A program made the position numbers and the translations under genes. Positions 55-63,025 of a stretch of DNA of 64,000 bases are shown in pieces. The stretch spans positions 620,001-684,000 of the forward strand of contig NC_135765.1 in assembly GCF_052425735.1 (NCBI RefSeq). The letters are read 5' to 3'. The first letter of the stretch is position 1. Every line of letters begins with the position of its first letter. Source of the stretch: Oculina patagonica. Its lineage: Eukaryota. Under the pieces are notes generated by a model. That model saw nothing but the letters and a program-made list of their open reading frames with translations, ran no database searches and was not told where the DNA came from.

Positions 55-3000
55 AATCCAGACCTTGCAAACCAAGATCATGAAGATGGGCTTGAACGAA
101 GAGTTTCAAAGAAAACGTAAACCCTGTTAAATGTTTCTGTTACAGTACTGTAATCACTGTTGATTAATTTAATTATTACTTAATGTAATGCTTTGAATTT
201 TATTTATTTTCTGTCCTAAGACTGTGTTCACATTCTCTTTACCTGTTTAAAGGAAGAAGCTCAAGAAATTCTTTGGCAAAAAAGTAAAGAAGCCAGAAAA
301 ATCTGTAAAAGGTTGGTTTTTAAAACATTTTTTAGCATAAATGTACATTTTATACCTAGTGTAAAAATACCGTTTTTAGAGCACTTGTGAACTAAGTCTT
401 TTCATGTTGAGAGGCACATAGAGCTCAAGGTCTAAACAAGAAGGAGCAAAGGCATGCATGTATTTTGGTATTTCCGCATGTATTCGGGGACAACTCAACA
501 TCATACATCTTTGAATAATGGCTTTGTTTCTAGGGTATAGATCCTACATGTATTTGCAAGCAAGGTAACTAGTTTTTTACAGGCAGGTGTGAAATTGACT
601 ATAAGAAGAATGTATTCAAACCTCTCTGGAAAAGATTTTTATTCATGCTTGATGGGTTTTACCAAATTTATTTCAGTGCGTAAAGATGACAGTTCTTCAA
701 GTGATGAAGAAGCTCCTCAAGACTCTCCTACTCCTCTTATCAAGGTCAGTCCCAATGTCTCTCATTAATGAGCTACCATACAGTCATGTACACTCACTTG
801 TTTAGACATTAGCACTGTGAATTTTGGTGGCATACACTGTATTATAAATCATCATCATTTTTCCGTTCTCCAAGTGGAGAATTGGGCCGTAAGCTCTCTG
901 CCTCAGGCTGTTCTGTCCTCCGCAGCCGATGCTGCTGCTGCCCATGTTCTTAAACCTTTCTTTTCCAGCTCCCTTTCGACAGTTCTTCTCTAAGTCTCGC
1001 GTGGTCGACCCTGTTTCCGTTTGCCTTCAGGTACCCATGTGAGAGCAATTCGTGGATGTGAGTGGTGATCCATTCTGAGGACGTGACCCAGCCACGTCCA
1101 TCTCCTCCTTGCCACTTGCTTGCTTATTGTCTCCATTCCTGCTCTTGCTCTAATCTCCTCGTTTGATCTCCTTGTTTATTATAAATCATGGTGTCTCCTT
1201 ATTGAAAGTTTCACTTACCTGTACTGCAGTCCACAAGAAATGCCTATTTAATACTGACCATTAAGTCTTGGGTCTCCTTCCAGGGCCTCATCTAGATTAG
1301 CACTTCTTGATGTATTCCTTTTTTTGTTCTTCTTCATACATTTATTGTTTTCATCTTGTTTGTTCTCAGATTAAGTCTGGTCACGGAAAAGGTCCAGCTG
1401 AGTTTGAGAAGCTGAGAATATTACAGGATCTTAGTGGAGAACATGTGGTATGTACATTTGGCAAGATTCAGAAAAACATGTAAACTTAACAAGAAACCAG
1501 ATCCTAGCAATAAGTGGCAGTTAGCCTCTCTTCCACTTTTGGGTTATAGGTAGCACAACAGTCTAATAGAAAGCCTGCAGAGTCCTGATTAAAACAAACT
1601 TAACACTGGCCCCAGATACGCCAAGTTCATCTGCAATATTTGGCAATTGAGAACCTGTTTCAAGCAGCTAGGAGTCACTTCTTTTCTAAGTCTTGTTTAA
1701 AAAGAATTGACTTTGCTTACCACATCCCCACACCCCAACTTGGCCAGCACTGAATTCACCATCCAACCCAGGAAGTCCAGGCACAGCTGCCCAAAACAGT
1801 TCCCTCACTAACAAGGTGAATCTAGATCTTTTGTAATCTTTTTTTTCTGTTTTTGCTTAGGGAGCTGTTTGGACAATAAAATTTACCCTTTGTGGCAGGC
1901 TCATGGTGAGTGTACTACTCCATTAGTTAAGTTGTATCTTTCTATCTTTGAACTTTTTGTGTATTTCTCTTCTTTTCAACTTTTGTTGAATTTTCTTCCT
2001 TTCCCTGCAGGCTACAGCTGGTCAGGATCACATGGTGGTAGGTGGAATGGAGTTTTGTTTATCATCAAGATTTCTTGTAACAAATGACTTGAAATAAGTT
2101 AATTTCATGTCAAACTATACTGTATTGTGGTCACAGAGTATAATGTAAGACAATGTTAAATGCAATGTGTATACATTTTGAATTTCACACCTGTGCCAGT
2201 CTGCCAGACTACAAACAGTGAATGCTTTCAGCTGTTACACTGTTATATATATTTTGCTTGACTTAAAATTAAACAAATGTTGAACACATTCTTTATGATA
2301 AGTGAAATGCATGCATTTGCAACCTCTCAGCAGAATGCTTGTATCTACTTGCAAGCCCTACTAATAAATATGTTCTCTGTTAAATTGTGTTGATTTGCAG
2401 AGAGTTTGGGTTCTCAAAGAATCCCAGGGTTATTTTGAAGAAATGAGAGCAAAATATTCTAAAACAGGTGAGATACCAATGCCATGATACAGTTAGTTAT
2501 TGTTAGAAAGCACCTTGAGAATGGTAGTTGATAGTTTAGATAAATACACTTTCTGAATGGGGCATTGATATGGGACCAAAAGGACTAGGACTTATAATTT
2601 TGTTGTGCTCTCTGTTACAGACTATCTCTTTTAGTTCGTTATTATTTCTATTTCTAGTTACATGTATTCAACATGTACACATGCTTGTTTTTGTCCAATA
2701 GAACTCTCAAATACAAGGGGTGGTGAATGGTCCCATCGTCTCAAATTTTTCTTTGTTGCCTTCTCGAAGTCCCGATTTCTTTTGCAAGGCTAAAAAAAGA
2801 TATCAGTCTCGCAAAGTCTTGCATTTACAATTCAGCACCCCTAATACAGTGGCTTTTTTTTTTTAAATGAAATTAACAGTGTTTCTTTTAAGGTGACAAT
2901 TCATCATCAGAGCATGAGGAAAAATCAGATGAATATACAGAAATGGAAGAAACATTAAAATCAAATGAAGAAAGCACTGGAGATACAGTTGAAGGAAAAA

Positions 3001-5790
3001 CAGAAAACAGTGAAGAAAGCGAGGTCAGTTGTGGTGCTTAATTGCTTGCTTGCTACATATGGTCTGTGGAAGTGGACCACCAAATGTGACCTTTAGATAA
3101 ACGTTGAGAATTTTTGACCTTGTCACATGTACTTGTGTTTTAGGAGCCTGCTGCAGAGGCCCCTGCTGAGGAGGATTTAGGCCCTTACATGAAAACACCT
3201 CTGTGTACGTACTGTGGGCACACTGGGGACGTGCTCGACTTGTCTTGGTCCAAGGTATGAAGACAAAAATTTGTCTGTAGTTATAATTGGTGAACAGATA
3301 CAAAATTCTCATTATTTTTTATTTTATTTTTATTATTATTTTTTTTTTTGCAGAATTACTTCCTTTTGTCTTCCTCAATGGATAAGACTGTCAGGTATTC
3401 TACTCGAATTTTAATTTTTTAAAAAACTCTTTCTTTGGTGAAGTTTATGTTGGAAATTTTGGATTTATAAATATTTACTTTTGCTGCAGGTTATGGCACA
3501 TCTCCAGATCTGAATGTCTGTGCTGTTTTCAGCATATAGACTTTGTTACAGCTATTTGTTTCCACCCCAGGGTAAGAGATTGCTTGAACTTACAGTTGTT
3601 ACAATGAGGCAAAAGAGAGAATTACGCATTCAGTGCAATTTTCTTACACCTTACATCAGTTTAAGTTTGTTATTCTTTGTCACAATGCTATAAGGAAGTG
3701 ACATTTACCGCTCATTAAAAGTCCAGCTGTTTCAACCCATTTTCAACAATATCTTGTCGTTTGCTCTGCAGGATGATCGTTACTTCTTAAGTGGCTCACT
3801 GGATGGTAAAATCCGTTTGTGGAACATACCAGACAAGAAGGTAGCACTGTGGAATGAAGTTGAAGGAACTGGTAAATATGTTCGATATGTACTGGTTGTT
3901 TCCTTTCTGGGGTGTATGATTACATTTTTCACAAGCAGTAACGATTAGCTAGCAATTGTCATTTTGGCGAGTCTTCATGATTTCTGAGAAACTGCAAGGT
4001 GCATGTAGGAATCCAGTTGCAATGTCTATCCTCTGGTAACGCACTCTTTAGTTGTCTCATGTTCTTTTACTTTTCTTATTTTTATTAATAGGAAGTAACC
4101 TCATTACTGCAGCTAATTTCTGTTTGAATGGCAAGTTTGCTGTAGTTGGCACTTATGATGGGCGGTGCATCTTTTACGAGACAGAGGTGAGACCAGTGTT
4201 TCTTGCATATCAGAATTCATAAAATAAGCCTGGATGACATATTTCTGTGTACACCTTATTAAATGATTATTTCTGTTTTGCTTTGTTAGCGACTCAAGTA
4301 TCATACCCAATGGCAAGTGCGGGCTGGAAGAAATAAGAAGGCCCGCGGTCGCAAGATCAGCGGTATTGAGCCAATGCCTGGAGAAGATAAGGTTACTTGA
4401 GTTGAATTTTGTTTCTGTGAGATTGAGTTCTGCCTTCAGTTAATTTTCGATATCTTAGTTCTGTTTGCCTCTTCCTTGGGTTAGCTTTTTCTTTTGGATA
4501 TTTTTACAAAGTAACATGCCGTGTTTTCTTTGTTTCCTGTTTAGGTTCTTATCACATCAAACGACTCTCGAATAAGACTTTATGACCTAAAGGACAATTC
4601 ACTTAACTGCAAGTACAAGGGTTGTGTTAACACCAGCAGTCAAATCAAAGCCGGCTTTAGGTGAGTAACACCAAAACTACGGCTTCTGCCTTTCCGGACG
4701 TAAGCCGTTTCGAGGCAAATGTAAGAGTAGACTTTTGGTCAACAGAATAAAGCAAAATCACTTGCTAGTATAACAAGGGATGTGTAGCCTGATCAGTAAG
4801 GATAGTTAACATTTCCAAGCATGTTGGGGACAGAAATCTAACATACCAAGGGCTCTTTCCATTTGTCAGAACTGGCCGGCCGGTCCGGTGGTTTTGAATG
4901 TTCAGTAAATGGGCCTTTTCCACGAGATTTTCCCACAAATCCACCATATAATATTTATGTATTGACTGATTTGGCAGGGCAAATCTGACTAACAATGGAA
5001 TTCTGTTCTCAAGTATACCGGTCTGGCCGGCCAGTTCTTACAAATGCAGAGCCAGCGCTAAGTTAATGTGTTGTTTTTACAGCCATGACGGTCAATATGT
5101 TATCTGTGGCTCAGAGGATCATTTTGTGTACATTTGGAGAACTCAACACGGATTTCCTTCCTCAAGGAGAGACAAGAACGAGTTTTACGAGAGCTTTTCA
5201 GGTAAAACAAGAAACTGGAGTAATTTCTTGTCATAAGAAATGTGTAAAGACCGTTCAGGGAGAGAATGTCTAATTTATAATGCATCTTCACATATTTATC
5301 ATCCAGCCAGGCGCAATAAGCGCAAAAACAAAAACAATGAACCAGTCAGAACTTAAAACAAGACGCTGCTGTTACCAACCGCGGGAAAAGTACGCGCAGC
5401 AAAGATTCGCCTGAGTTGACAGTTGGTTTCTTTTTGGCTTCCAATTGGTTAGCCAAAAAACGTTTGTTGGCTCTATTAGACAGTTACAGCGCTCGACAGC
5501 AAACGCATATTATAATTATTAAGAGGAAATTTTAAACTACTTTGTCAACGCGATGAAATAATTAAATTAGCCACCGCTTTAGTTTCGAGCGTTAGTTCTT
5601 AGTCAGACCTGGATTGAATCGAAATGCTTTTCTTCTCTCCCAAGCCCACGCGGTTGTGGTGACGGCAGCAATGTTCGCCCCAGTCCCCTGGTTAATTATT
5701 CCGCCAGACACGAGCTGTCAGCCATTCACTACCGAGGTACTGGTAACCGCTGACTGGAGCGGCGCCATTAAGTTATTCGTCAACAGATGA
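55..5790 (+). CDS. WDR44: WD repeat-containing protein 44 (rabphilin-11), 3' portion; about 17 exons, 5' end outside the window
   Basis: GT-AG exons at about 55-116, 252-310, 677-743, 1370-1447, 1861-1905, 2011-2036, 2401-2467, 2893-3023, 3143-3254, 3354-3394, 3491-3571, 3772-3871, 4092-4186, 4290-4391, 4545-4660, 5083-5201 and 5645-5790 (TGA). They translate to WDR44-typical segments such as [90 protein letters not shown] and VLITSNDSRIRLYDL. Confidence 0.93.
853..1176 (-). mobile_element. 5'-truncated RTE-clade LINE 3' end in a WDR44 intron
   Basis: The minus strand translates SNEEIRARAG...RRRWTWLGHVLRM...RIALTWVPEGKRKQGRPRET*RRTVE, an RTE C-terminus with stops, followed by a (TGA)n tail. 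It is flanked by a 13-bp direct repeat TATTATAAATCAT (840-852, 1177-1189). Confidence 0.85.
4848..5060. mobile_element. MITE (Harbinger-like)
   Basis: Imperfect terminal inverted repeats (TIRs): ccatttgtcagaactggccggcc ... ggccggccagttcttacaaatg. Confidence 0.55.
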
Positions 5791-6175
5791 CACGCGCATG
5801 TCTGATTGGCATCACCATGGCAACTCTTGCAGAGGAATCGCATCCAACCAGCCGCCATCTTGGATTAAACAGCCACTCCAGAACTGGGATCGATATTTAA
5901 CTGTTACGCGGTAAAGATCTTCAATACAGCTGCGTGGCTTGACGCAATACAGAACCACTGGGATCTACTTCATTTAAAAGTGTTAGAACGCTTTGTAGAA
6001 CAAGCATAACACAATCTGTTATAAAATATGATGCTGATAGGTCTTGTTTATTCATTTACTGAGCTGAAAGCAAAAAAAAACGTAAACTTAGAGACGTTGT
6101 ATTAGTATACCACCAAATTCTCAAAACTAACTTCAAGGGAAGTTAGTTTTGTATGGTGACAAATAAGGAGGATTA

Positions 6176-6344
6176 CAGCAAGGCGCCCAAAAGTGTGACC
6201 ACTTTTAATTTATTCACATTCTTTCGTGCAGATTTAATCCAATCACAAGTCAACTGCAAGCTATCCACGGCTTTTGATTGGATTAAATCTGCACGAAAGA
6301 ATGTGAATAAATTAAAAGTGGTCACACTTTTGGGCGCCTTACTG
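6176..6344. mobile_element. Palindromic MITE, Tc1/mariner type
   Basis: About 70-bp near-perfect TIRs (cagcaaggcgcccaaaagtgtgaccac ... gtggtcacacttttgggcgccttactg) with TA on both flanks. Confidence 0.85.
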
Positions 6345-7090
6345 TAATACCTCGAGCTAAGGACTGTTAGAGGTTTAGAGGGTACAGAAACTGACTCGTC
6401 TTCAGTCGTCTTTTGAGTGACTTTGAGTCCGTCCTTCGTGAGTTTAGGAAGACTGGATGAAACTAAACAGGGACGGACGCATAAGAGACGACTTGGGACG
6501 AGTCAGGTGCATAAAGACTATACTAGTGATGTAGGTACAGAACGGAGATATTTCCTCAAACTTCTACATGTAGGCCAGCGTTCAGTTGAATAATCATAGG
6601 AATGTTAAAGGATTTTGTATGTGCAGGGAAGTGTAAAAATGCCGCAAAGCCGTGACTAGTGTTTTAGAGTGCAAAAGTGCCTCGTGTTAGCTGTGGTGAG
6701 GTTTTCTATTGTCCTGAAATTTGCAATGAAAATTTAAATTTTGTCTGCTCGACCGAGTAATTCGGCGGGAAAATCTTTAGGTGGACGGTTAATCTTTTCC
6801 AGGAGAATTCACAGAATCGATTATAGAGTTGGCAACATTATTTAAAATTCCAGCTAAAATTCTAAAGAGGATTAATTATTAAAAAATATTAAGGTAGTCA
6901 CAAACTGCAATACTGAATACAGTGGACAGTTTAATAATATATTTAACAATGAATTTCTGCAGGTCGGCGTCGCTCGCTTGAGTTTTTGTGAATGTATGAA
7001 ATGAACCGAGTGATCCTGCTGTAGGCTATTGGAATTAAAAGTTTTTAAACAGCAATGTTTCTTAGTTGTCATTTAGTTGTACAAGTTTTA

Positions 7091-7703
7091 TACGGTGAAA
7101 TCCCAATTTCTCAAACCCTCGAGTTGTCGAACCTCCCGATAACTCGAACCAAATGTCTTTTCCCTTCCCACTTTCCACTGAAATTACCCACGAATTACCT
7201 TATTCTTACTAATTTTCGCGCGTACTTAATTTCGCGAAAATTCGAGAGGCGAATTTCGCGATTGCAAGAACAATTTGAGAAAAAGTGTATTAAATCTCGC
7301 GATTTTGTCAGTGTTTTATGGATCAGTCATCAAGGACAGGAACCACCAAAGTTCTAGCTCAATGTAACTACAAGGAGCCAGCAAATGGAAACTTTAGTGA
7401 CTGTACTAAAGAGATTTTGAACCAATTTACAGGCTCGAAACAGTAGTCAGAGGAAGGGTGCTAGTCAAAACCAAGACGGAAAGATATTTTTAAAGGTAGA
7501 TAGTTGCGGTTCCAAACATTAAAAATTTCTACTGTTTTGATATATAATTATGGTATTAATTTTCGCGTGTTTAAATTTCGCGCATTTTTTTTTTCGCGCG
7601 TGCTAAATTTCGCGATTATTTTGAAATCGCGAAAATTAGTAAGAATAAGGTCTCAAACCAATTTTCGTTTCCATTGAAGGTTCGAAAAATTGGGATTCCA
7701 CTT
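7091..7703. mobile_element. MITE with a second MITE (7198-7650) nested inside
   Basis: Inner TIRs ccttattcttactaattttcgcg / cgcgaaaattagtaagaataagg. Outer ends gtgaaatcccaatttctc / gaaaaattgggattccac. Confidence 0.65.
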
Positions 7704-29571: not shown

Positions 29572-32500
29572 ATGGAGGGAAAAGTGCAGTTTGGAACGGT
29601 AGATTTTGCCGTGTTTGGAGTTATGTTGCTCCTATCTACTTTCATTGGAATATACCATGCCTTTACTGGAGGAAAACAGCGAACAACGAAGGAATTTCTG
29701 TTTGCTAACCGCGGGATGATGGCTATACCTGTGGCCTTGTCTTTGCTTGCATCATTCATGTCAGCAATTACAATTCTTGGTGTACCTTCAGAGATTTACA
29801 TTTTTGGAACACAGTACTGGCTTATTATTGCGTCTTATGTGATTCTTTTCCCATCGGTGGCACTGATATTTGTCCCTGTGTTTCGTGCAGTGGATATTTC
29901 GAGTTCGTATGAGGTAAGTACAAAGCTTAAATTCAAAACAAAAAAACTCGTGATTTTTGTTTATATCAATAGTGTTATGAACGATCCTTGCAACTCAATC
30001 GGTATGTTTTTCTCTATTTGATCGACACATACACCTTACATTTTGTAAACATCGTGATGTTTTTAATGATTTTGACAGCTTGCTTTATCTGTTTTACTCG
30101 CTAATTTATTAATCCACGTGGTGTATTAATCATTGACCAAAGTCCACTTTGAGTTAGCAAAGTCATATATCGGCAGAGAACTATGATCAAGTTACAAAAG
30201 CAAAAATTTTAAACAACTTTCAATTTAAAATTCTTCCTTGTAATTTTTTTATTATTGTTTGTGCAATGTCAAGAATCATCACAAAATCAAATCAAATCAA
30301 ATCAAATATTTTTATGCACGTAAAATATATATCAAAAATATATCAACAAGGTTGTTCAAAATAAGCCGGCAATCGGCGCATTTCACCGGGTTGTCCTAAA
30401 ACCCGGAATGCCGGAAATCCGGATAAGAAAGCCCGGAATCCTAAAACCCGGAATGACCTTTTTTGTGTACGCCTTTTTCAATAAAATACGTGGAAATATC
30501 TTATTTTATTTTTTTTTTTGGGGGGGGGGGATTTGGAAGTTTGTTACGAGTTTCCAATTACGTTGCGAGTTAGCGAATCAAATTGTCAATTTCGATACAA
30601 AGTTTCCAACTTCGGCCTGACTGAACTTCGCAATTTAGCTAGTTGAGGAGAAACAAAACATGTTGTTTCAAAGTCATGGCGATATCTGAACTCAATGATT
30701 TTAAAGGAAACAAGTTACGGCGGGAATATTCCAGCGATTATTGCGGCTCAAGTTGCAAAACATTTGTTTGACCAAATAGTCGACGTCAATAAAAACCTTA
30801 CATTGTGTTAACTTGTGCAGATTAAAACCTTCTGTAGTTATGTTATCAACAAGGGCTTTGCTACGCTTAATCGTTGGGAAAAAGCCATAAAAAAGTATAA
30901 AAGGCTCACAAACTTTAAATTAATGTTCAGCGAGCCATAAACATGTTGGTGTGACAAATATGTCTTCCCTGTCGCCTCGCTTCGGCTTCGATTAAAATCA
31001 ACTTTATGTAAAGATCCTGATGGGTAAACCATGTATCCAGTTTCATCCGGCTTACAAACGCAAAAGACTTGAAAATTAAGATTATACCTCACACAAAGCG
31101 TAAAAAAAAAAATTTTTTACAAAAAGGAAAATTTGACCAAATTTCTGCCTGCATAAAATTCATTTATCGTCAAATTACTTGCGTGATCGCTGGTGTGAAA
31201 CGTTGTCTGACACTTCAACTGAATTATCGCTTCCATCATCAAGCGACGAATATATATCGACAGCGTTTGATTGATACCCATTTTTGAAAGGACATGTTCA
31301 TGACGGTATATGAATGTAATGCTTCTACTCACTATCAGTCAGAACATTGATCAGAAGGTTGTTATTGCCGTTCTGCTTGTTCGGACAACAAGCAACAAGG
31401 ACAACCCCATTTCACCGGCTATTCCGAATACTGCGTCGGCTACTCGGAATATTAGTAGGTCAGTTCTGAGTGTGTGTTATCAAGTTCTGAGTGTTTTGTA
31501 GCCCCCTACTTTTTGGATGGAACCTGCTACTCAAAAACCCACTGACAACCCTGATCAAATATTTTTTATGCACATTTTATTTTATTTTAATTTTTATACG
31601 TAACCTAGGAGTACAAAAAGTTTTTGTTTGAACGTGCACCTGTGTCTATAAGTTAAAAAATCTATTAAAAATAGAAAAAAGAAGTTCTATTTAAAAATCT
31701 AGAAATATGTTAAAAATTATTGTTGATATTTACAATCAATATTTCCAAGTAAAAATTTAAAATATATAATAGCGACCTTAAGATTTGACTACAAGTACGA
31801 GATCGAGTACTAGTACGACTTTGGAATGATAATATTTTCGAGACAATTGTATCCCCCAAACTATAACTCTTTCTTGTGGCTGACTTACACATAAATAAAC
31901 ATTAGGGATAAGATTGGCGTAATAAGTGATTAGAGGAGGCACACGAATTGGGTTTGAAAACTCATACTCATACTCAATCTGGTACTCGTAGTCCAATCTA
32001 ATATAATATAAATGTGGCAAAGAGATCACAATTTATCCTTATTAATAATAATATTTATTAATAGGAAGCCTTCCTGGGCTTGTTGAAGAGATTAATTTCT
32101 TTCATAGAAACAATATATATTACTTGATGGCTAGTTTATTGGGATAGTTACATGTAGATTTATTTTATACATGCATGCATATCAAGTGGTTTCCACTCCC
32201 CTCTCCCCCGGCCCCCTGCTGTGACTGTAGGGGATTCTCAATTCCTAGGCCTAGTGTATGGTGGCCCAGCATTATCATAGTAAAATATGTTAGGTCTTGC
32301 AAACAAAAGCGTAAGAAATGTGAAAAAACGAAAAATAAAAGCAATCAAAATAGAAAAAAAAATGAAAAAAGTATAATTAATATAAGTATAATTAATATGA
32401 TTAAAAAAAAATAAAAAAAATAATTTAAGCACAAAAAATATTTTAAAAAAAATTGATTACAAAAAATAAAATAAAAATAATTTAAGCACAAAAAATATTT

Positions 32501-35500
32501 TAAAAAAATTTACAATCGAAAAAAAAAGAAAAAGAGGAAAAAAACATTTAAAATCATTGTTAAAAACAACATTGAAAATCAACATTAAAAATTGACATTG
32601 GAAATCAACATTAAAAATAGACATTGAAAATACAACATTGAAAATCAACATTGGAAATCAACATAGGAATTGAAAAAACGTTATTTCCACGTGGCCCATC
32701 GTTATCATAGACCAGGATGCTTTGCATGCATATAAAACATATTTCATCCATAAGAGAGCCCCAGAAGTCATTAGAAGCTCCTGATACACCAGGGTTTTCT
32801 GGACGGTACTTGATATGTGCAGTAGGTGATAACTAAAGTGTACATATTGTGAGCACCAGAGAGGAAAACGCAAAGGAAACAATTCATTGTTCATAAACCA
32901 AAGCAGTGGCCCATCGTTCTCGTAGCCCGTGATGACTTTAATCAGCGGACTTCAGCCAGCCCGCTTCAGCGGAGCTTGAGATCCTTGAGACCTGCCATAT
33001 CGAAGAGAAATCGCCTGAGAAATCCAAAGACTACGTGCGGCGTCCAAAATGAGTAGAATTCGACACCAGCACATCACACGAGCTTACCGGATAGCCAAAG
33101 TGTTCCACGCAAGCAATCTTCAGGTTTTCAAGGGTTAAATCATCCCTGGAAAACTTGACGAATTCTCTCGGTTGTACCGGGCGAAATGTTTGCTTGTTTT
33201 CAGGTTCTGCTGTCAACCTTTGCACAATGATGTCGCTTGGTGCCGTAACCCTTTAGGGTTGTTAGTAATCGGAGTAACGGCGGAACACGGAACGGCGGAA
33301 CGGCGTAACGAGAATCGGCGTAACGAATTTTTTTTCTTTTACATAACTTAATTAATTTGTTGCTATGAAGAAAATTAAATTAATAAATTCTCACTTTGCA
33401 GACCTGCAGACAGCAGTACCTGGACCCATTTTTTTTCTTTTTTCACACACAATAGGCCGCAATGTCGGTAAATGGCTTATTTGATCTCTAGACTTAATTA
33501 CGTAAAACTAGGCAAAGAAACAAAGAAGCAAACCAACAGTAAATAGTATCCCACAAAAAAGGGCACCCACATTTTCTTACTCCTTTGAGGTCGATCTAGA
33601 GCCAGGATTTCGAGTTTATTTCGAGTGAGAATTTCAAGGAGAAGCCGGCGACTGCCCTTCGGACTTCCTCGCCCCAATCAAGATAATGAAACGTACAAAA
33701 CCGAAGCATGTCAACAAAGCTGTTGAAAAAAAAAATAGAAGGGCCTGAAAAGTTACTGGTTTCGTAAGAAAAAGAAAGAAAGAAAATGACAAGCCCACAA
33801 CAAGGGGTATTTCAGTTGGTCACCGATCCAAGTACTAACCCTGCCCAACAGGGCTTAACTTCAGCGATCAGACGAAAACCAATGCTTTCCTTGTGGTATC
33901 AGTGTCAAACGAGACAAAGGGTTATAAGAGTCATGCAAATAGAGAAAAAGAAATACCTGGTTTAAATGGATCTTTTGGAAAATTCGGTACTTTCCTACTA
34001 AAACTGGTCTTAACTTTTATGAGCTGATTTACATCTTACTGATACCACATGGAAGGCAACGGTTCTTGTCCGATCGCCGAAGTTAAGCCCCGTTGGACGG
34101 GGTTAGTACTTGGATGGGTGACCAACTGAAAATACCCCTTGTTGTGGGCTTTTCATTTTCTTTCTTTCTTTTTCTTGTGAAACCAGTAACTTTTCAGGCC
34201 TTTCTATTTTTTTTTCAACAGCTTCGTTGACATGCTTCGGTTTTGTACGTACGTTTCGTTTTTGTACGGTTTTGCGCGGAACACTTTGACTATCCGGTAA
34301 GCTCGTGCGATGTGCTGGTGTCGAATTCTACTCATTTTGGACGCCGCACGTAGTCTTTGGATTTCTCAGGCGATTTCTCTTCGATATGGCAGGTCTCAAG
34401 GATCTCAAGCTCCGCTGAAGCGGGCTGGCTGAAGTCCGCTGATTAAAGTCATCACGGGCTACAAGAACGATGGGCCACTGCTTTGGCTTATGAACAATGA
34501 ATTGTTTCCTTTGCGTTTTCCTCTCTGGTGCTCACAATATGTACACTTTAGTTATCACCTACTGCACATATCAAGTACCGTCCAGAAAACCCTGGTGTAT
34601 CAGGAGCTTCTAATGACTTCTGGGGCTCTCTTATGGATGAAATATGTTTTATATGCATGCAAAGCATCCTGGTCTATGATAACGATGGGCCACGTGGAAA
34701 TAACGTTTTTTCAATTCCTATGTTGATTTCCAATGTTGATTTTCAATGTTGTATTTTCAATGTCTATTTTTAATGTTGATTTCCAATGTCGATTTTTAAT
34801 GTTGATTTTCAATGTTGTTTTTAACAATGATTTTAAATGTTTTTTTCCTCTTTTTCTTTTTTTTTCGATTGTAAATTTTTTTAAAATATTTTTTGTGCTT
34901 AAATTATTTTTATTTTATTTTTTGTAATCAATTTTTTTTAAAATATTTTTTGTGCTTAAATTATTTTTTTAATTTTTTTTAATCATATCAATTATACTTA
35001 TATTAATTATACTTTTTTTCATTTTTTTTTCTATTTTGATTGCTTTTATTTTTCGTTTTTTCACATTTCTTACGCTTTTCTTTGCAAGACCTAACATATT
35101 TTACTATGATAATGCTGGGCCACCATACTAGTGTCATTTTTCCTGTAATATCCTAGCAACTGCCATTCCAAATGTTAAAATCTTACAAATTAATCTGTCA
35201 GAATAGCAGACCATGGCCCACAGAAAAAAGCAGATTGTATGTGTCACAGCTGATATAAAAATTATTCATGAACCATGCACATCCCCTTCCAGACCCTGTT
35301 ATAGCTGCCAAAAACCTTTAACTAAAATTTCCACCTACCCACAGGCAGAGATAACAGTTAAGACATACTTTCACATAACATACAGGTTTGTTTTTGTGGG
35401 CAGAGATGATTGGTCCCAAGTTGCACCCCCAACCTGGAGAGCCATGGGGTGGTCCTTTGTAGGACTACCCCCCTTCCTCTTTTCCATTATCCAATCCAGC

Positions 35501-56060: not shown

Positions 56061-59000
56061 TTATTTCTTTCCTTCGATCATGATAATGTGATAACCAAAC
56101 TTTGTTTTGACTGGTGGGTCGGTGTATACTGGTTTATCCACTGTGCTGGGGGAAAGAGCAAAAGCGGCATCTTGAAATGCACCAACCTGTATATGGAGAA
56201 ATTTATTTCACAAAATTAAGTTTTGGACAGGAATGAAAGGGCTAAGCTTGTGCTCACTTGCGTAGCAGTCAATTTCTTTCCAAGCATGCAGAGGAAACGA
56301 ACGAACATGCGAGCGAATGAGCGAAAAAATGTGGAGAAGAGGGGAGGGGGTGGGAGTGGGAGTGGGAAAAGAAAATGAGCTGCCTGTAACTGATCCCAGA
56401 TGAAATGCCCTGAAAAATGCTGCAATCGACCCTCCAAGTTTATTTTTTCCTTAGTGGCCTTTTGGTCCGCTCTCGGTTTTGGTCCCGTGAAAATTTTTTT
56501 CGTAAATTAATCCCCCCTTTCTTTTTTTTTTCTTTTTTTTCGGCCTTTTCTTTTTCCCCCCCCAATTTTCCCCAAGGCAATGCCCACCTTCCCTTGGGAA
56601 ATCAACTGTCACATGAGAACCACAGTTACAGTTACAGAGACCATCAAAGGTGACAGTGACAGGGACAGTGACAGTGACCGGTAACAGATCACAGTGACAG
56701 TGAGATGACAGTGACAGAAGGTAAAGGATCATTGCTTTTAATTCAATTTGTTGCTTACCATTGATCCTCTTGTCATCCATCCCAGATCACCCTGATAGCC
56801 AATCAAAAGGAGATGAATTAAAAATCAGTTAACAATAAAAACAAGCGAAAATAATGAACGACGTTTCGGTGACATCCTGGCACCATTTTCAAGTTAAAAT
56901 TCATATGCGAAAGAAAGTTATTAAAGGTGTGATAATGAATAAATTAAGATAAAAATAAATGTTCAATGTTCATGTTCATTAATGAGAACAATGTCCGTTC
57001 AAGTCTAAACAAATACCTTCGCGCGAATTGAGTCCGACTGAGTGTTAAGGCTCGGTTTCTTCATGCGAATCCACAACATTTCGTGTATTAAGCAATCGAA
57101 CTTTCCCTGACATTTCTTTAAGATCTTAAAATTGTTGGTCAGGTCGCCAACTTTATCAATTCGGTGTTCATTTTGAAGGTGTTTTCCAATGGCTGAAAAT
57201 CGGTGTTCCTCAATGCGCTTATAAAGGTGACGGCTGGTGTAACCGACGTATTCTGCATCGCACAGATCACATACATAGTTATAAACAACGCACTGTTGAT
57301 TTATTACAGGTGGTTTTGACTCCTGTAATTTGAGATCATCGCCAACTTTTCGGCTTCTAAAAACTGGTTGCAGTTTGTGGTCAAGTTTGTTACTCAAGTC
57401 CGAGAGGTGTTTCTTTACTATGTCCGCTGATTTCTGGTCCTTGAACGGCAGGACAATGCGGTAGATATTCTCTGTTTGAGGCGTCGATCGTGTGTCTTGT
57501 GACATCACTGAATTAACGAAATGGGTGATGGTGGAGTTGACAAGAGAATCTGGGTACTTGAGATTAGAAAACATCAGTTTAAGGCGTTCGCATTCTGTTG
57601 TGAATAGTTCCCATGTTGATGACAGGCGGTAAGCACGGTTTAGCATGGTTTTAACTAAAGATCTTTTGTAGCGGTTGTCGACGTGACTTTGGTAGTGTAA
57701 GAGCAGACCAGTGTTTGTTGGTTTACGGTAAACACTTGTTATCAGCTTGCAGCCCTTCTTGCATATCTCAATGCCCACAAATGGCAGCTTACCATTTGAC
57801 GCGATCTCCATGGTGAAGGATATAGATGGATGACAGTTGTTCAAAGTCTTCAGAAAGGCTTCTGCGGTTGGTATGTCTTTCACTGTGGCTAGTGTATCAT
57901 CTACGTAGCGTCTGTAGAAGTCTGGCAACTTGTTCTCGTTCTGTAGCTTTTCTTCGATGGAACAAAGAAAAGTATTGGCCATAAGGGGACCCAGAGGAGA
58001 CCCCATCGCTACTCCGTCAATTTGTTGGTAGAGTTGACCGTTAAATTGGAATAACTGTTCCTTTGTTGCTACTGACAACAGTTCAATTAAATCCCACTTG
58101 CTGATGTTTAGGTTGTGTGTGTTGTTGAACCAGTTATCAACAAAAGCTTTTTCAGCAAGGATCTCGATGGTTTCTTGTAGTGGGACGTTCGTAAATAGAG
58201 AAGAGACATCATAAGATACAAGGATGTCAGTTTCATTGAAGCTCAGATTGCGAATCTCGTCAGCGAAGGAAAATGTGTCAGATATTGTGTAGCTGTTGAT
58301 TGACAGGGGCTTGAGTTTATCGTCGAGCCATCTCGCGAGGGCGAAGTTGTAAGTACTTGTGGCTGATAGAATGGGCCTCATCGCTAGCTTTTCTTTATGG
58401 GTCTTGGGAAGACCATAGAGATGGGCGAGTCGTGATCCTTTCGGGCAAACTGAATCGGCAATCTGTTTTGGGAGAATTTTTCTAACGACGGATTCGAGGT
58501 GTTTCTCTTTCTGTAGTAAAGGGTGGTAGTTTTTGGGCTTTCGTCCACGCGTCTTGGGTCTCTCCAAACTAACGGTGGTAAATTTAGCTGTATCATTGAT
58601 GGAAGATTCACTCAAAAGGCGAACATACTCTGCCTTATCCATAACAACCACTCCTGTACCGTTATCTGGTTTCGTGATTACAATGTCATCTCTTCGTTTT
58701 AGTTGTTCAATAGCTCTTTGTAGCGCTTTCGGTGGTTTTGGGGCTTTACACTCGATGTAGTTGAGCGCGATCGATCGAAGGGTCGCCGCAGCTAATTCCT
58801 TCTTATCATCAGATAATGAGGGCTCCAGTTGCCAAAAAGCTTTCTCGAAGCTAGCTTGGATGTCCATTGGAGAGATACGTTGCGGTAAGGAGAACTTCAA
58901 ACCTCGACACAGAACGAGCTTTTGAAAGAATGAAAGCTTGTAGGAGGAAATGTTCTGGATGTGCTTGTCTACATCTTGATCGTTGTGTAGCAGTTTCATA

Positions 59001-62000
59001 ACTTTGTTGATCAACAAAGTTATGAAACTGCTACACAACGATCAAGATGTAGACAAGCACATCCAGAACATTTCCTCCTACAAGCTTTCATTCTTTCAAA
59101 AGCTCGTTCTGTGTCGAGGTTTGAAGTTCTCCTTACCGCAACGTATCTCTCCAATGGACATCCAAGCTAGCTTCGAGAAAGCTTTTTGGCAACTGGAGCC
59201 CTCATTATCTGATGATAAGAAGGAATTAGCTGCGGCGACCCTTCGATCGATCGCGCTCAACTACATCGAGTGTAAAGCCCCAAAACCACCGAAAGCGCTA
59301 CAAAGAGCTATTGAACAACTAAAACGAAGAGATGACATTGTAATCACGAAACCAGATAAAGGTACAGGAGTGGTTGTTATGGATAAGGCAGAGTATGTTC
59401 GCCTTTTGAGTGAATCTTCCATCAATGATACAGCTAAATTTACCACCGTTAGTTTGGAGAGACCCAAGACGCGTGGACGAAAGCCCAAAAACTACCACCC
59501 TTTACTACAGAAAGAGAAACACCTCGAATCCGTCGTTAGAAAAATTCTCCCAAAACAGATTGCCGATTCAGTTTGCCCGAAAGGATCACGACTCGCCCAT
59601 CTCTATGGTCTTCCCAAGACCCATAAAGAAAAGCTAGCGATGAGGCCCATTCTATCAGCCACAAGTACTTACAACTTCGCCCTCGCGAGATGGCTCGACG
59701 ATAAACTCAAGCCCCTGTCAATCAACAGCTACACAATATCTGACACATTTTCCTTCGCTGACGAGATTCGCAATCTGAGCTTCAATGAAACTGACATCCT
59801 TGTATCTTATGATGTCTCTTCTCTATTTACGAACGTCCCACTACAAGAAACCATCGAGATCCTTGCTGAAAAAGCTTTTGTTGATAACTGGTTCAACAAC
59901 ACACACAACCTAAACATCAGCAAGTGGGATTTAATTGAACTGTTGTCAGTAGCAACAAAGGAACAGTTATTCCAATTTAACGGTCAACTCTACCAACAAA
60001 TTGACGGAGTAGCGATGGGGTCTCCTCTGGGTCCCCTTATGGCCAATACTTTTCTTTGTTCCATCGAAGAAAAGCTACAGAACGAGAACAAGTTGCCAGA
60101 CTTCTACAGACGCTACGTAGATGATACACTAGCCACAGTGAAAGACATACCAACCGCAGAAGCCTTTCTGAAGACTTTGAACAACTGTCATCCATCTATA
60201 TCCTTCACCATGGAGATCGCGTCAAATGGTAAGCTGCCATTTGTGGGCATTGAGATATGCAAGAAGGGCTGCAAGCTGATAACAAGTGTTTACCGTAAAC
60301 CAACAAACACTGGTCTGCTCTTACACTACCAAAGTCACGTCGACAACCGCTACAAAAGATCTTTAGTTAAAACCATGCTAAACCGTGCTTACCGCCTGTC
60401 ATCAACATGGGAACTATTCACAACAGAATGCGAACGCCTTAAACTGATGTTTTCTAATCTCAAGTACCCAGATTCTCTTGTCAACTCCACCATCACCCAT
60501 TTCGTTAATTCAGTGATGTCACAAGACACACGATCGACGCCTCAAACAGAGAATATCTACCGCATTGTCCTGCCGTTCAAGGACCAGAAATCAGCGGACA
60601 TAGTAAAGAAACACCTCTCGGACTTGAGTAACAAACTTGACCACAAACTGCAACCAGTTTTTAGAAGCCGAAAAGTTGGCGATGATCTCAAATTACAGGA
60701 GTCAAAACCACCTGTAATAAATCAACAGTGCGTTGTTTATAACTATGTATGTGATCTGTGCGATGCAGAATACGTCGGTTACACCAGCCGTCACCTTTAT
60801 AAGCGCATTGAGGAACACCGATTTTCAGCCATTGGAAAACACCTTCAAAATGAACACCGAATTGATAAAGTTGGCGACCTGACCAACAATTTTAAGATCT
60901 TAAAGAAATGTCAGGGAAAGTTCGATTGCTTAATACACGAAATGTTGTGGATTCGCATGAAGAAACCGAGCCTTAACACTCAGTCGGACTCAATTCGCGC
61001 GAAGGTATTTGTTTAGACTTGAACGGACATTGTTCTCATTAATGAACATGAACATTGAACATTTATTTTTATCTTAATTTATTCATTATCACACCTTTAT
61101 CTTAGTATAAATAACTTTCTTTCGCATATGAATTTTAACTTGAAAATGGTGCCAGGATGTCACCGAAACGTCGTTCATTATTTTCGCTTGTATTTATTGT
61201 TAACTGTATTTCTAAATTTAATCTTATAAGAATTAAAAATCAACCACAAAATACATACAATCAACGGGCAATGTTTTCATTTTTAGCAATATTTTCAGAA
61301 GGGGAAGATATTACAGAAGGAGAGACCAAACAATAATGGTTGAACTCAACAAGTGACAGGAACCTACAGTGTATGAGGAAGTGGGAACACAGGGAGCCCA
61401 CAAAAGCAGTGTGACTGTATGTTTGAAATATGAAGAAATATATGAGAATATTTAAAGGGTCTTAGTGCAGTAGCAGCCAATCCAGGCAGGTAGGTAAAGT
61501 CTGCATAGGAGCCTAGTGACCCATCAGGCAGAGGTTATCCCTGTTTTGGTAACATGAAGCGAATTAAAGTATTTCTATTCCCCCTGGATGAGATGCTAGT
61601 CCATTGCAGAGTTACCCCCTGCATTAATTTTGCCGGTACCCATTTATACACCTGGGTAGAGAGAGGCACTGTGAGAGTAAAGTGTTTTGCCCAAGAACAC
61701 AACACAAGGACTCTGGCAGGGCTCGAACCCGGACCGCTCGATCTGGAGTCCGGCGCACTAACCATTAGGCCACTACACCTCCCAGCAGCCAATCCAAGAC
61801 TTTTCAAATCGCACAAATTTGCCATTTAGAGCCACAGAGATGACAAAACACAACAACTGATGCACATTTAAATTTATTTTAGGCTTAACAGAGACTTAAC
61901 TTGCAATACTTTGGCAGTAAAAAGACCCTTTCGATATTCCCATCCATTTCGAATATACAAACAGTCAAACCACTTGTTTGCGTCCCCTGTGCTTGGAATG

Positions 62001-63025
62001 GTGAAAATGGAAATGGATTACACAACACTCTTGTACATACCCCTTGCCTTGCTTTATCTTCACTGTATGCTGAGGCAACTTCATTAAACTTCTGACCATC
62101 CTTTATCTTGGCCATGGCTTCCATTACTTTGGAGTGTTTTTCACATAAAATATGTCGCACCTGTGTGTCAATGAAAAGCAGCTCAGGAAAGAAAATATAC
62201 ATTTTTAACTACAACCTGAACATTTTGAAAACTTTGTAAACTAATGGATGATCATATAATCATGTACCCTTACACTTTAAATTTCCAAGCTCAAGGTACA
62301 TTGCTCATTGTTGGCTTGTTAGTTTTTTTTTCTTAGTTTCTCATTTGGAGGTACTGTTTCTTGTTAATGATGAGAACTTAGGCCTGGTTCATACTAGCGA
62401 CATAACGACATGGACATAATGACATAAAGAAAAGTTCAGTTCTTTCCTTATGTTGTTATGCTTATGCCATTATGTTCCAACTATGTCATTATGTCATGTT
62501 GTTCACACTGGGGACATAAAACATCAGCGTGAGGTGTTTTTAGCATTTGCGTGACCTTGCCGTTATGTTGCTAGGGTGAACCAGGCCTTACAATGCTCAA
62601 ATGGGCTCCTGGCTCCATTACTTGATAAATTTCTTAAATTTTGCCTGACAATATATTGATATGGTATTAAAAGAGAAATAATATACTGATCACACCGGGG
62701 GTGAGGGGGTCAGTTGCCATACCTTTACTGCAGTTCCACCTTTCTTTGCCTTCCCTCCACTGGCACCCTCATCCTCACCACCCCCTCCCCCTGAAATTCA
62801 AAATAAACGCAGCTCAGCGGAATATTTGTAACAGCATTTGAGTGGCCACTGGAAAAGATGGACAGCTATTTATCTGTTTCTTGTTTTGAGTCCACTTTCT
62901 TCTGGGTGTACTCTGTTTACTGTTTGGGGCTTTTGCTCCAGCTCCAGCGATAACACAGACTTGCCTTTTGCTGCTCCTTTTCCTTTCTCTTGTTTTCCAC
63001 CACTCTTTCCTTTTTTAGGCGGCAT
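56061..63025 (-). CDS. PIN4: Peptidyl-prolyl cis-trans isomerase NIMA-interacting 4 (parvulin-14)
   Basis: Exons 63025-62965 (MPPKKGK..., GC donor), 62790-62723 (...KKGGTAVK), 62160-62041 ([16 protein letters not shown]...[10 protein letters not shown]), 56791-56759 ([11 protein letters not shown]) and about 56186-56061 ([41 protein letters not shown]). The frame is consistent throughout. Confidence 0.95.
56857..56895 (-). ncRNA. Minimal type I hammerhead ribozyme (U3-A8 variant), left arm
   Basis: Reverse complement of the 61137-61175 motif; it is in the sense orientation of the PIN4 pre-mRNA. Confidence 0.7.
57005..58999 (-). CDS. Penelope-type RT + GIY-YIG endonuclease, left arm (DKG motif changed to DNG), probably 5'-truncated
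   Basis: Motifs [36 protein letters not shown] and [27 protein letters not shown]. The first ATG is at 58999. Confidence 0.9.
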   Translation of the reverse strand: MKLLHNDQDVDKHIQNISSYKLSFFQKLVLCRGLKFSLPQRISPMDIQASFEKAFWQLEPSLSDDKKELAAATLRSIALNYIECKAPKPPKALQRAIEQLKRRDDIVITKPDNGTGVVVMDKAEYVRLLSESSINDTAKFTTVSLERPKTRGRKPKNYHPLLQKEKHLESVVRKILPKQIADSVCPKGSRLAHLYGLPKTHKEKLAMRPILSATSTYNFALARWLDDKLKPLSINSYTISDTFSFADEIRNLSFNETDILVSYDVSSLFTNVPLQETIEILAEKAFVDNWFNNTHNLNISKWDLIELLSVATKEQLFQFNGQLYQQIDGVAMGSPLGPLMANTFLCSIEEKLQNENKLPDFYRRYVDDTLATVKDIPTAEAFLKTLNNCHPSISFTMEIASNGKLPFVGIEICKKGCKLITSVYRKPTNTGLLLHYQSHVDNRYKRSLVKTMLNRAYRLSSTWELFTTECERLKLMFSNLKYPDSLVNSTITHFVNSVMSQDTRSTPQTENIYRIVLPFKDQKSADIVKKHLSDLSNKLDHKLQPVFRSRKVGDDLKLQESKPPVINQQCVVYNYVCDLCDAEYVGYTSRHLYKRIEEHRFSAIGKHLQNEHRIDKVGDLTNNFKILKKCQGKFDCLIHEMLWIRMKKPSLNTQSDSIRAKVFV
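59022..61016 (+). CDS. Penelope-type RT + GIY-YIG endonuclease, right arm (DKG intact), probably 5'-truncated
   Basis: Uninterrupted ORF with the same motifs. It lacks a Cys-rich linker between RT and EN, consistent with Penelope/Poseidon rather than Neptune. Confidence 0.92.
   Translation: MKLLHNDQDVDKHIQNISSYKLSFFQKLVLCRGLKFSLPQRISPMDIQASFEKAFWQLEPSLSDDKKELAAATLRSIALNYIECKAPKPPKALQRAIEQLKRRDDIVITKPDKGTGVVVMDKAEYVRLLSESSINDTAKFTTVSLERPKTRGRKPKNYHPLLQKEKHLESVVRKILPKQIADSVCPKGSRLAHLYGLPKTHKEKLAMRPILSATSTYNFALARWLDDKLKPLSINSYTISDTFSFADEIRNLSFNETDILVSYDVSSLFTNVPLQETIEILAEKAFVDNWFNNTHNLNISKWDLIELLSVATKEQLFQFNGQLYQQIDGVAMGSPLGPLMANTFLCSIEEKLQNENKLPDFYRRYVDDTLATVKDIPTAEAFLKTLNNCHPSISFTMEIASNGKLPFVGIEICKKGCKLITSVYRKPTNTGLLLHYQSHVDNRYKRSLVKTMLNRAYRLSSTWELFTTECERLKLMFSNLKYPDSLVNSTITHFVNSVMSQDTRSTPQTENIYRIVLPFKDQKSADIVKKHLSDLSNKLDHKLQPVFRSRKVGDDLKLQESKPPVINQQCVVYNYVCDLCDAEYVGYTSRHLYKRIEEHRFSAIGKHLQNEHRIDKVGDLTNNFKILKKCQGKFDCLIHEMLWIRMKKPSLNTQSDSIRAKVFV
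61137..61175 (+). ncRNA. Minimal type I hammerhead ribozyme (U3-A8 variant), right arm
   Basis: AAC-UUGAAAA-U-GGUG(ccaggaugu)CACC-GAA-ACGU-C-GUU: stem I AAC/GUU, core UUGAAAA, stem II GGUG/CACC, palindromic stem III ACGU and a GUC cleavage triplet. It lies in the element's 3' UTR, where PLE hammerheads are known to occur. Confidence 0.72.
61515..61782 (-). mobile_element. tRNA-derived SINE, near full length
   Basis: The minus-strand head ggtgtagtggcctaatggttagtgcgccggactccagatcgagcggtccgggttcgagccc has Pol III A and B boxes, followed by a core shared with other copies in the window. Confidence 0.85.
62381..62587. mobile_element. PIF/Harbinger-like MITE in PIN4 intron 2
   Basis: TTA|ggcctggttcatactagcgacataacg ... 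cgttatgttgctagggtgaaccaggcc|TTA. Confidence 0.8.

Follow-up and report, generated by a model that had tools for sequence, protein, structure and literature searches.

A loopless head-to-head palindrome of an endonuclease-bearing Penelope-like element, inserted within a single target-site duplication in a PIN4 intron of Oculina patagonica

The stretch of DNA analysed here, which we call the window, comprises 64,000 nt of the Oculina patagonica genome (NCBI RefSeq assembly GCF_052425735.1, contig NC_135765.1, positions 620,001 to 684,000 of the forward strand), and between positions 56815 and 61242 it contains two copies of a Penelope-like element (PLE) that meet head-to-head with nothing between them and are enclosed together in one target-site duplication (TSD). 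We find that this palindrome is a young and polymorphic insertion in an intron of the host gene PIN4, the empty site of which is still segregating, and that pairs of the same layout recur at many other places in the genome. For its origin we favour, tentatively and at a little less than an even chance, a route in which both nicks of the target prime reverse transcription and the two cDNAs end at one template position and are joined by a template switch.

The inverted repeat was recovered by a repeat search of the window as two arms of 2089 nt (56922–59010 and 59011–61099) with 0 nt between them, and a base-by-base comparison of the arms outwards from the axis at 59010/59011 found one sole mismatch within this length, a G at 58661 against a T at 59360. 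Past an 11-nt indel the arms extend outwards to 56828 and 61206 with one further substitution, in the 3′ untranslated region (UTR), and the arms thus differ at three sites in all, namely the substitution in the open reading frame (ORF), the indel and the UTR substitution. As a working unit we took the right arm together with its tail (59011–61229, 2219 nt), with unit positions numbered from the axis outwards. The right arm itself (59011–61206, plus strand) is a 2196-nt copy of the element followed by a tail of 23 nt (61207–61229, plus strand) that is confined to this arm, whereas the left arm (56828–59010, minus strand) is a tail-less copy of 2183 nt which runs from unit position 1 to about 2196 and shares 2 nt (CA) with its adjoining TSD copy. 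The two 13-bp copies of the TSD, GAATTAAAAATCA, occupy 56815–56827 and 61230–61242. In each arm the ORF opens at an ATG 11 nt from the axis and comprises 664 codons plus a stop (57005–58999 on the minus strand and 59022–61016 on the plus strand), and the ORF substitution changes the DKG of the right arm (59355–59363) into the DNG of the left arm, which lies in a 14-nt stretch at 58653–58666. The right arm agrees with other family copies at all three sites of difference, including the 11-nt stretch tcttagtataa (61100–61110, plus strand), which the left arm lacks and which the right arm shares with every other family copy examined; judged against these copies, the derived state at all three sites is that of the left arm. 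A first-pass annotation, made from the letters of the window, had already described spacerless arms with both enzymatic domains inside one TSD, the three differences, the one-sided tail and the overlap of left arm and TSD, and our re-analysis reproduced every one of these details. A scan of the window gave no second long spacerless inverted repeat; another inverted repeat of the window, with arms of 709 nt at 32404–33112 and 34272–34980 that are 99% identical, has a spacer of 1159 nt.

Contigs of four public coral runs (Logan; four organism labels, four studies) were compared with positions 56400–61600 of the window. In all four runs a contig joins 56814 to 61230, skipping 4415 nt with 13 letters common at the joint, and the empty allele so defined holds a single 13-mer, not two. 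Since there is one 13-mer in the empty allele, the palindrome as a whole, which is real and polymorphic, is a single insertion, as the first-pass annotation had proposed when it predicted a single 13-mer at this place. The filled allele was not visible in any of the four runs examined; in run X1 the empty joint had a depth of about 36, and the adjoining flank contigs had depths of 35.6 and 16.8. In addition, a 100-nt query across the axis matched, in any of the indexed public runs, at most two of five sampled words, and these were probably words lying within an arm.

The identity of the element was assessed by domain and motif searches. The element protein matched RVT_1 of Pfam (E 3.3e-11, 43.7 bits against a cut-off of 29.6), which places the reverse transcriptase (RT) domain at about 59634–60188, and its last 121 residues matched GIY-YIG (E 1.7e-5, 25.5 bits against a cut-off of 22.6), placing this domain at about 60765–60968, C-terminal to the RT in the same ORF. 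An N-terminal DKG motif (PDKGTG), which is used as diagnostic for PLEs (PMC8557442), occurs in the right arm, as it does in those other copies that include this position. A search of PDB sequences with the same protein returned weak RT matches only. Two further features of PLEs, an adjacent inverted copy and the enclosure of the entire unit in one TSD, are both found here, and the window copy has no partial tandem forming a pseudo-long terminal repeat (pLTR). These data show that the element is an endonuclease-bearing (EN+) PLE with an RT and, behind it at the C terminus, a GIY-YIG domain, and the earlier assignment to this group stands on RVT_1, GIY-YIG and DKG alike. Rfam found no hammerhead, either in the window element at E values up to 5 or in three related loci at E values up to 1, and the microRNA matches that it gave at the axis merely mirror the hairpin; hammerhead cleavage, which we considered as the origin of the 5′ end shared by the arms, was rejected on the lack of an Rfam hammerhead match. 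By eye, a GAAAC-GUC core can be made out near 61160 in the 3′ UTR (61140–61175, mirrored at about 56857–56895), where it follows UUGAAAA and a GGUG...CACC stem and resembles a minimal PLE hammerhead with U3/A8 for C3/G8, although Rfam is silent about it.

Alignment to longer copies found by a search of the same genome (529 Mb) places the axis inside the N-terminal coding region of the element, within the ORF. A copy on contig C2 (L003/L031) runs at least 76–85 nt upstream of unit position 1, and this upstream stretch recurs on C4 at 90% identity and in a related family at 76%; when translated in frame it is conserved with the related family at the protein level. The full unit of the related family is 2541 nt long and unit position 3 aligns with its position 386, so that, together with the upstream coding sequence, the alignment indicates that the arms are 5′-truncated by about 385 nt. 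We also considered the axis as the natural 5′ end of the element or of its RNA, and rejected this because L003, the C4 copy and the related family all continue upstream with conserved coding sequence; an apparent start of L003 at unit position 1 was merely the end of the query. The native base at position −1 is an A, both in the longer copies and at a loose end of run X5 at 59010, and the longer copies read GGCCATA up to the axis and TCAACAAAG beyond it, of which only the central AT is self-complementary. The native palindrome that the first-pass annotation had suggested looking for at the axis is accordingly no larger than this dinucleotide.

Other copies of the family were surveyed at the best 40 of 442 candidate places in the same genome. 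Among these 40 best-scoring places there are at least 14 further insertions in which two copies stand head-to-head with their 3′ ends outwards, each pair inside its own single TSD of 9–15 bp. Most pairs have unequal arms (5′ endpoints at, e.g., 57/1722, 734/1435, 1041/2040 and 1167/2082) that are joined with 0–3 nt of overlap. In L015 and L025 the second arm extends further 5′ than the first, and as it outruns the first it cannot be a copy of it, but requires an independent cDNA. Every pair with readable outer ends has one end that stops at unit position 2189–2200 and one that enters the tail (2206–2219), a combination seen in 14 of 14 family pairs and, in addition, in L043 of the related family, and for which independent choice of the ends gives P of about 6e-5. 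Single copies end at either site, and untailed singles are common; an inverted tail at the 5′ side of untailed single copies was looked for and none was found, which indicates that the tail is not universal. The left arm of the window ends in the narrow 2189–2200 zone that is typical of untailed copies, single copies included.

The 5′ endpoints of the two arms are also correlated. They lie within 5 nt of each other in three of 16 pairs, namely the window, L006 (411/411) and L029 (1734/1729), for which shuffling of endpoints gives P of about 4e-4, and in several further pairs they are only 26–88 nt apart. The axes of the symmetric pairs differ, falling at unit positions 1, 411, about 1730 and about 1860. 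Several centres are loopless or nearly so, with 0 nt in the window, 0–1 nt in L052, 1 nt in L044 of the related family and 1 and 2 nt in two junctions from run X5. The junction of L052 turns at 1861/1860 and then, after 16–18 nt, jumps to 1993; L006 shows a mirrored 7-nt duplication around an 8-nt centre, and its junction was recovered independently from short reads, in a contig of run X1; in L005 a 10-nt loop and 32 nt of inverted sequence precede a jump to the tail; and the junction of L029 is complex. The product in the window is not unusual: head-to-head pairs in one TSD with a one-sided tail are the norm of the family. They are also known for PLEs in general, in which insertions with an adjacent inverted, 5′-truncated copy and a tail of 30–40 bp that is often one-sided (Craig et al. 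2021, PMC8557442), and inverted pLTRs within one TSD (Arkhipova et al. 2013, PMC3846280) have been described.

The nature of the tail can be read from the related family, which is 73% identical to that of the window. Its members L018 and L043 are partial tandems, with a truncated upstream unit followed by a full unit of 2541 nt, and in such tandem copies the tail is matched by the opening bases of the unit that follows and has the G of GAATTTTG directly after it. Beside the tail, the target nearly always begins with GAA and then a T or an A, in agreement with the RNA immediately beyond the tail; this was seen at the outer ends of L004, L005, L009–L013, L015, L023, L029 and L052 and at 61230 of the window, and it suggests either base pairing between target and RNA at the distal start site or a preference in cleavage.

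Three loci from these searches may be recorded in their own right. L043 (G000:C9:26601000-26610999, arms 2229–4769 and 5156–7696) contains two full 2541-nt units head-to-head at 99.5% identity, each of which follows its own truncated pLTR piece (65 and 305 nt), with the tail on the minus arm only, and it is a textbook PLE arrangement. L044 (G000:C4:62975500-62984500, arms 3627–4498 and 4500–5371) is a perfect palindrome of 872 nt with a 1-nt centre, the axis of which lies in an upstream pLTR piece at about position 2445 of the related unit, and both of its arms are cut at about 770–828 of that unit, which is unusual for 5′-truncating elements. In L007 (about 3110–3779; G000:C9, near 27782950-27783615) an insert of 670 nt splits one arm of the 411/411 palindrome; it has terminal inverted repeats of about 20 nt (CATTAGAGTGAATTCGTGTA, with its near reverse complement opposite) and in this resembles a small DNA transposon.

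In vitro (Frangieh et al. 2024, PMC11167929), a purified PLE protein acts on both strands of the target, which it cuts and extends; reverse transcription begins there at two adjacent internal sites, with the sequence between them making up the tail, and the protein is predicted to be dimeric (PMC11167929). For the insertion in the window we infer priming in vivo from both nicks, one RNA shared by two polymerases and a template switch, in the following order. A single EN+ PLE would have integrated into an AT-rich site of the PIN4 intron, its nuclease cutting the two strands 13 bp apart and so producing the TSD, and each 3′-OH would then have primed reverse transcription. The bottom-strand end would have started at the distal start site, copying the tail first and giving rise to the right arm, and the top-strand end, relying on 2 nt of microhomology, at a point about 23 nt to the inside, giving rise to the untailed left arm. 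Both minus-strand cDNAs would have stopped at one shared nucleotide of the template, about 385 nt before the full length is reached, most probably because one 5′-truncated RNA was copied by both, with the trailing polymerase displacing the leading cDNA. Finally, a template switch by way of the AT may have carried one cDNA onto the 3′ end of the second, after which each would have been copied through to the opposite flank, leaving a loopless palindrome.

This route would account for one tailed and one untailed end per event because each nick would prime at its own start site, and for the canonical untailed site and the microhomology of 2 nt at the end of the left arm because this arm would come from a second priming. 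It would also cover the pairs whose second arm outruns the first. Likewise, equal arms, correlated endpoints and loopless centres would all follow if one truncated RNA were copied twice with a strand switch. The correlated endpoints fit two polymerases on one RNA, and the loopless centres are easier to reconcile with an end-to-end switch from strand to strand than with a hairpin, for which a loop is required. Several points weigh against priming from both nicks. All derived differences lie in the left arm, for which two independent cDNAs give P of 0.125–0.25 and which would be expected if the left arm had been copied from the right; the junctions of L006 and L005 suggest that self-copying at the cDNA tip also occurs in the family; the copying of one RNA twice is deduced indirectly; the in vitro findings were made on a Poseidon element of a lizard and not on the window family (PMC11167929); and the axis itself is seen in the assembly only. 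It is possible, although we would sooner doubt than assert it, that the family pattern reflects the normal integration cycle of Penelope, in which a dimeric particle would copy one RNA twice from adjacent starts, each cut strand acting as primer and the trailing polymerase switching at the end to the displaced leading cDNA. If this were true, symmetric palindromes would be the run-off products of truncated RNA.

The first-pass annotation had explained the palindrome by one target-primed event in which the cDNA snapped back on itself; the single-event inverted duplication has stood, but the fold-back is not the best supported way of reaching it. Synthesis would in that case start at the right flank with the tail, run to unit position 1 and continue when the 3′ end of the cDNA folded back and copied everything in reverse, the new strand being linked to the left flank with the last 23 nt of its template left uncopied. 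Exact symmetry of the arms would then be automatic, with both ending at unit position 1, and all three differences are indeed derived in the left arm, the presumed copy, which agrees with a fold-back only if the right arm was the earlier of the two. At the junctions of L006 and L005, mirrored non-native sequence and loops of 8–10 nt also argue for it, as does the self-priming inferred from palindromes at the head-to-head junctions of inverted PLE copies (Arkhipova et al. 2013, PMC3846280). However, a hairpin needs about three or more unpaired bases, and a loop that left no trace would require bases that were self-complementary by chance, so that an intramolecular hairpin is hard to square with a loopless axis at which AT is the sole native palindrome. 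The copy would, moreover, have to halt 23 nt early and in the same 2189–2200 zone as untailed single copies, and the position of the left-arm end in this zone fits a second priming site better than a chance stop. As untailed singles are common, a fold-back also predicts tail-less pairs, of which there are none in 14; the inverted stretches for which self-copying is the simplest reading are short, at 18 and 32 nt, compared with the 2.2 kb that the window would require; and L015 and L025 cannot arise in this way. We regard a single-primed snap-back as an unlikely explanation of the window palindrome, but place it second after priming from both nicks.

It is improbable that the insertion is real while its symmetric interior was misbuilt, for instance if an unequal pair or a lone copy had been mirrored by fold-back long reads or by collapse of a consensus. 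Words crossing the axis occur in no public run, the four runs show the empty allele only, with the X1 joint, at its depth of about 36, close to the deeper of the two flank contigs, and the tandem and inverted structures of PLEs are known to trouble assemblies (PMC8557442). Against this, the arms differ at three sites including the 11-nt indel, which excludes simple mirroring; the two flanks are not alike, and in its tailed end, its untailed end and its TSD the insertion agrees with real insertions of the family; L006 provides another symmetric junction that is present in short-read data; and the window has no further repeat of the kind. The argument of the first-pass annotation that this is not a typical assembly fold-back, drawn from the differing flanks and the continuity of PIN4, is thus upheld, and the three differences between the arms add to it.

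We consider it equally hard to believe that the template was already double-stranded or palindromic, either as a hairpin transcript of an older palindrome or as a sense–antisense duplex, with the polymerase crossing at a blunt end. Such an end would yield a loopless turn, and pLTR promoter motifs in both orientations have led antisense templates to be considered (Arkhipova et al. 2013, PMC3846280), but the axis occurs at one place only in the genome, the public runs hold no more of its sampled words than stated above, the differing axes of the symmetric pairs show that no master palindrome was inherited, and the end of the left arm coincides with the canonical untailed site instead of lying in foreign flank. 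An origin that is later or composite, by two adjacent insertions or by inverted duplication through an error of replication or repair, is very improbable indeed, since fold-back repair of breaks can yield long palindromes but nothing specific to it was found at the locus, while one 13-bp TSD surrounds the whole unit and is single in the empty allele, a later inversion-duplication would not put a canonical untailed 3′ end against the left TSD, and 14 or more loci repeat this layout, each inside a TSD of its own.

The host gene PIN4 (parvulin-14-like) was recognised from ORF translations and lies on the minus strand. Its exon of 11 residues occupies 56759–56791, with the acceptor CAG at 56792–56794, and the upstream exon has its last base at 62041, where it ends in ...EDKARQG and is followed by the donor GTATGT. 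With exons recovered on both sides, the continuity of the gene across the element that had been claimed at the first pass is confirmed; a search of the genome with Rotamase_3 of Pfam gave no PIN4 match, the exons being too short. The insertion is situated within the intron, 36 nt from the splice acceptor, and the intron measures 834 nt without it and 5249 nt with it. The PIN4 pre-mRNA of the filled allele would hold an antisense and then a sense copy of the element, that is a near-perfect hairpin of 2.2 kb, and its branch-point region would be displaced; this allele may be harmful and rare. To the left of the insertion site, in the PIN4 intron or the flank of its exon, a short imperfect array of (A/G)GTGACAGTGACAG-like units is found at 56648–56717.

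The tandem and inverted copies of PLEs and their tail have been described and in part explained. In this context the locus is an unusually clean natural product, being young, bounded by a TSD, composed of two almost full copies of the ORF and accompanied by a segregating empty site. Together with about 15 sister insertions it places testable constraints on the mechanism, namely one tailed and one untailed end, correlated arm lengths and loopless joins.

The closest known systems are the canonical EN+ PLEs (Evgen'ev & Arkhipova 2005; Arkhipova 2006, via PMC8557442) and Pen2a of Adineta vaga (PMC3846280). As far as the canonical elements are characterized in those accounts, the window element resembles them in having an RT followed by a C-terminal GIY-YIG domain, the DKG motif, a head-to-head inverted copy and the 5′ truncation that is frequent among them, and also in the one short TSD around the unit, the short extension at one end only (23 nt here) and the AT-rich target. 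Published EN+ PLEs, in so far as these accounts portray them, mostly carry a short inverted pLTR beside a pLTR–ORF–pLTR unit, whereas the window element has equal arms with near-complete ORFs, no spacer and no direct pLTR, and Rfam finds no canonical hammerhead in it. The Poseidon element PAc of Anolis carolinensis, studied in vitro (PMC11167929), has two start sites that match the 3′ ends of the window family at about 2193 and 2219, and in that system, too, cleavage is AT-rich, like the target in the window, and both strands are cut and extended. Complete or inverted insertions were not reconstituted in that study (PMC11167929). No primer–RNA homology was reported for PAc, whereas the target beside the tail in the window family nearly always starts with GAA(T/A), like the RNA past the tail, and PAc comes from a different host and possibly from a different clade.

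In self-primed hairpin second-strand synthesis and in viral copy-back, a nascent strand templates itself, which gives rise to an inverted duplication with a central unpaired loop that is kept. The looped junctions of L005 and L006 are like such products; the window differs from them in its loopless axis and in a copied arm that halts at a canonical start site before the template end. In the twin priming of human L1, as Ostertag and Kazazian are said to have proposed in 2001, both 3′ ends of a staggered break prime and an inverted structure results within one TSD; the second primer reportedly anneals inside the same RNA, and the inverted segments are therefore different and non-overlapping. In contrast, both arms of the window cover the same 2.2 kb from the 3′ region inwards and overlap throughout. 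Seen beside these systems, the locus is a clean and extreme example of known PLE architecture, and not a new class of element or product.

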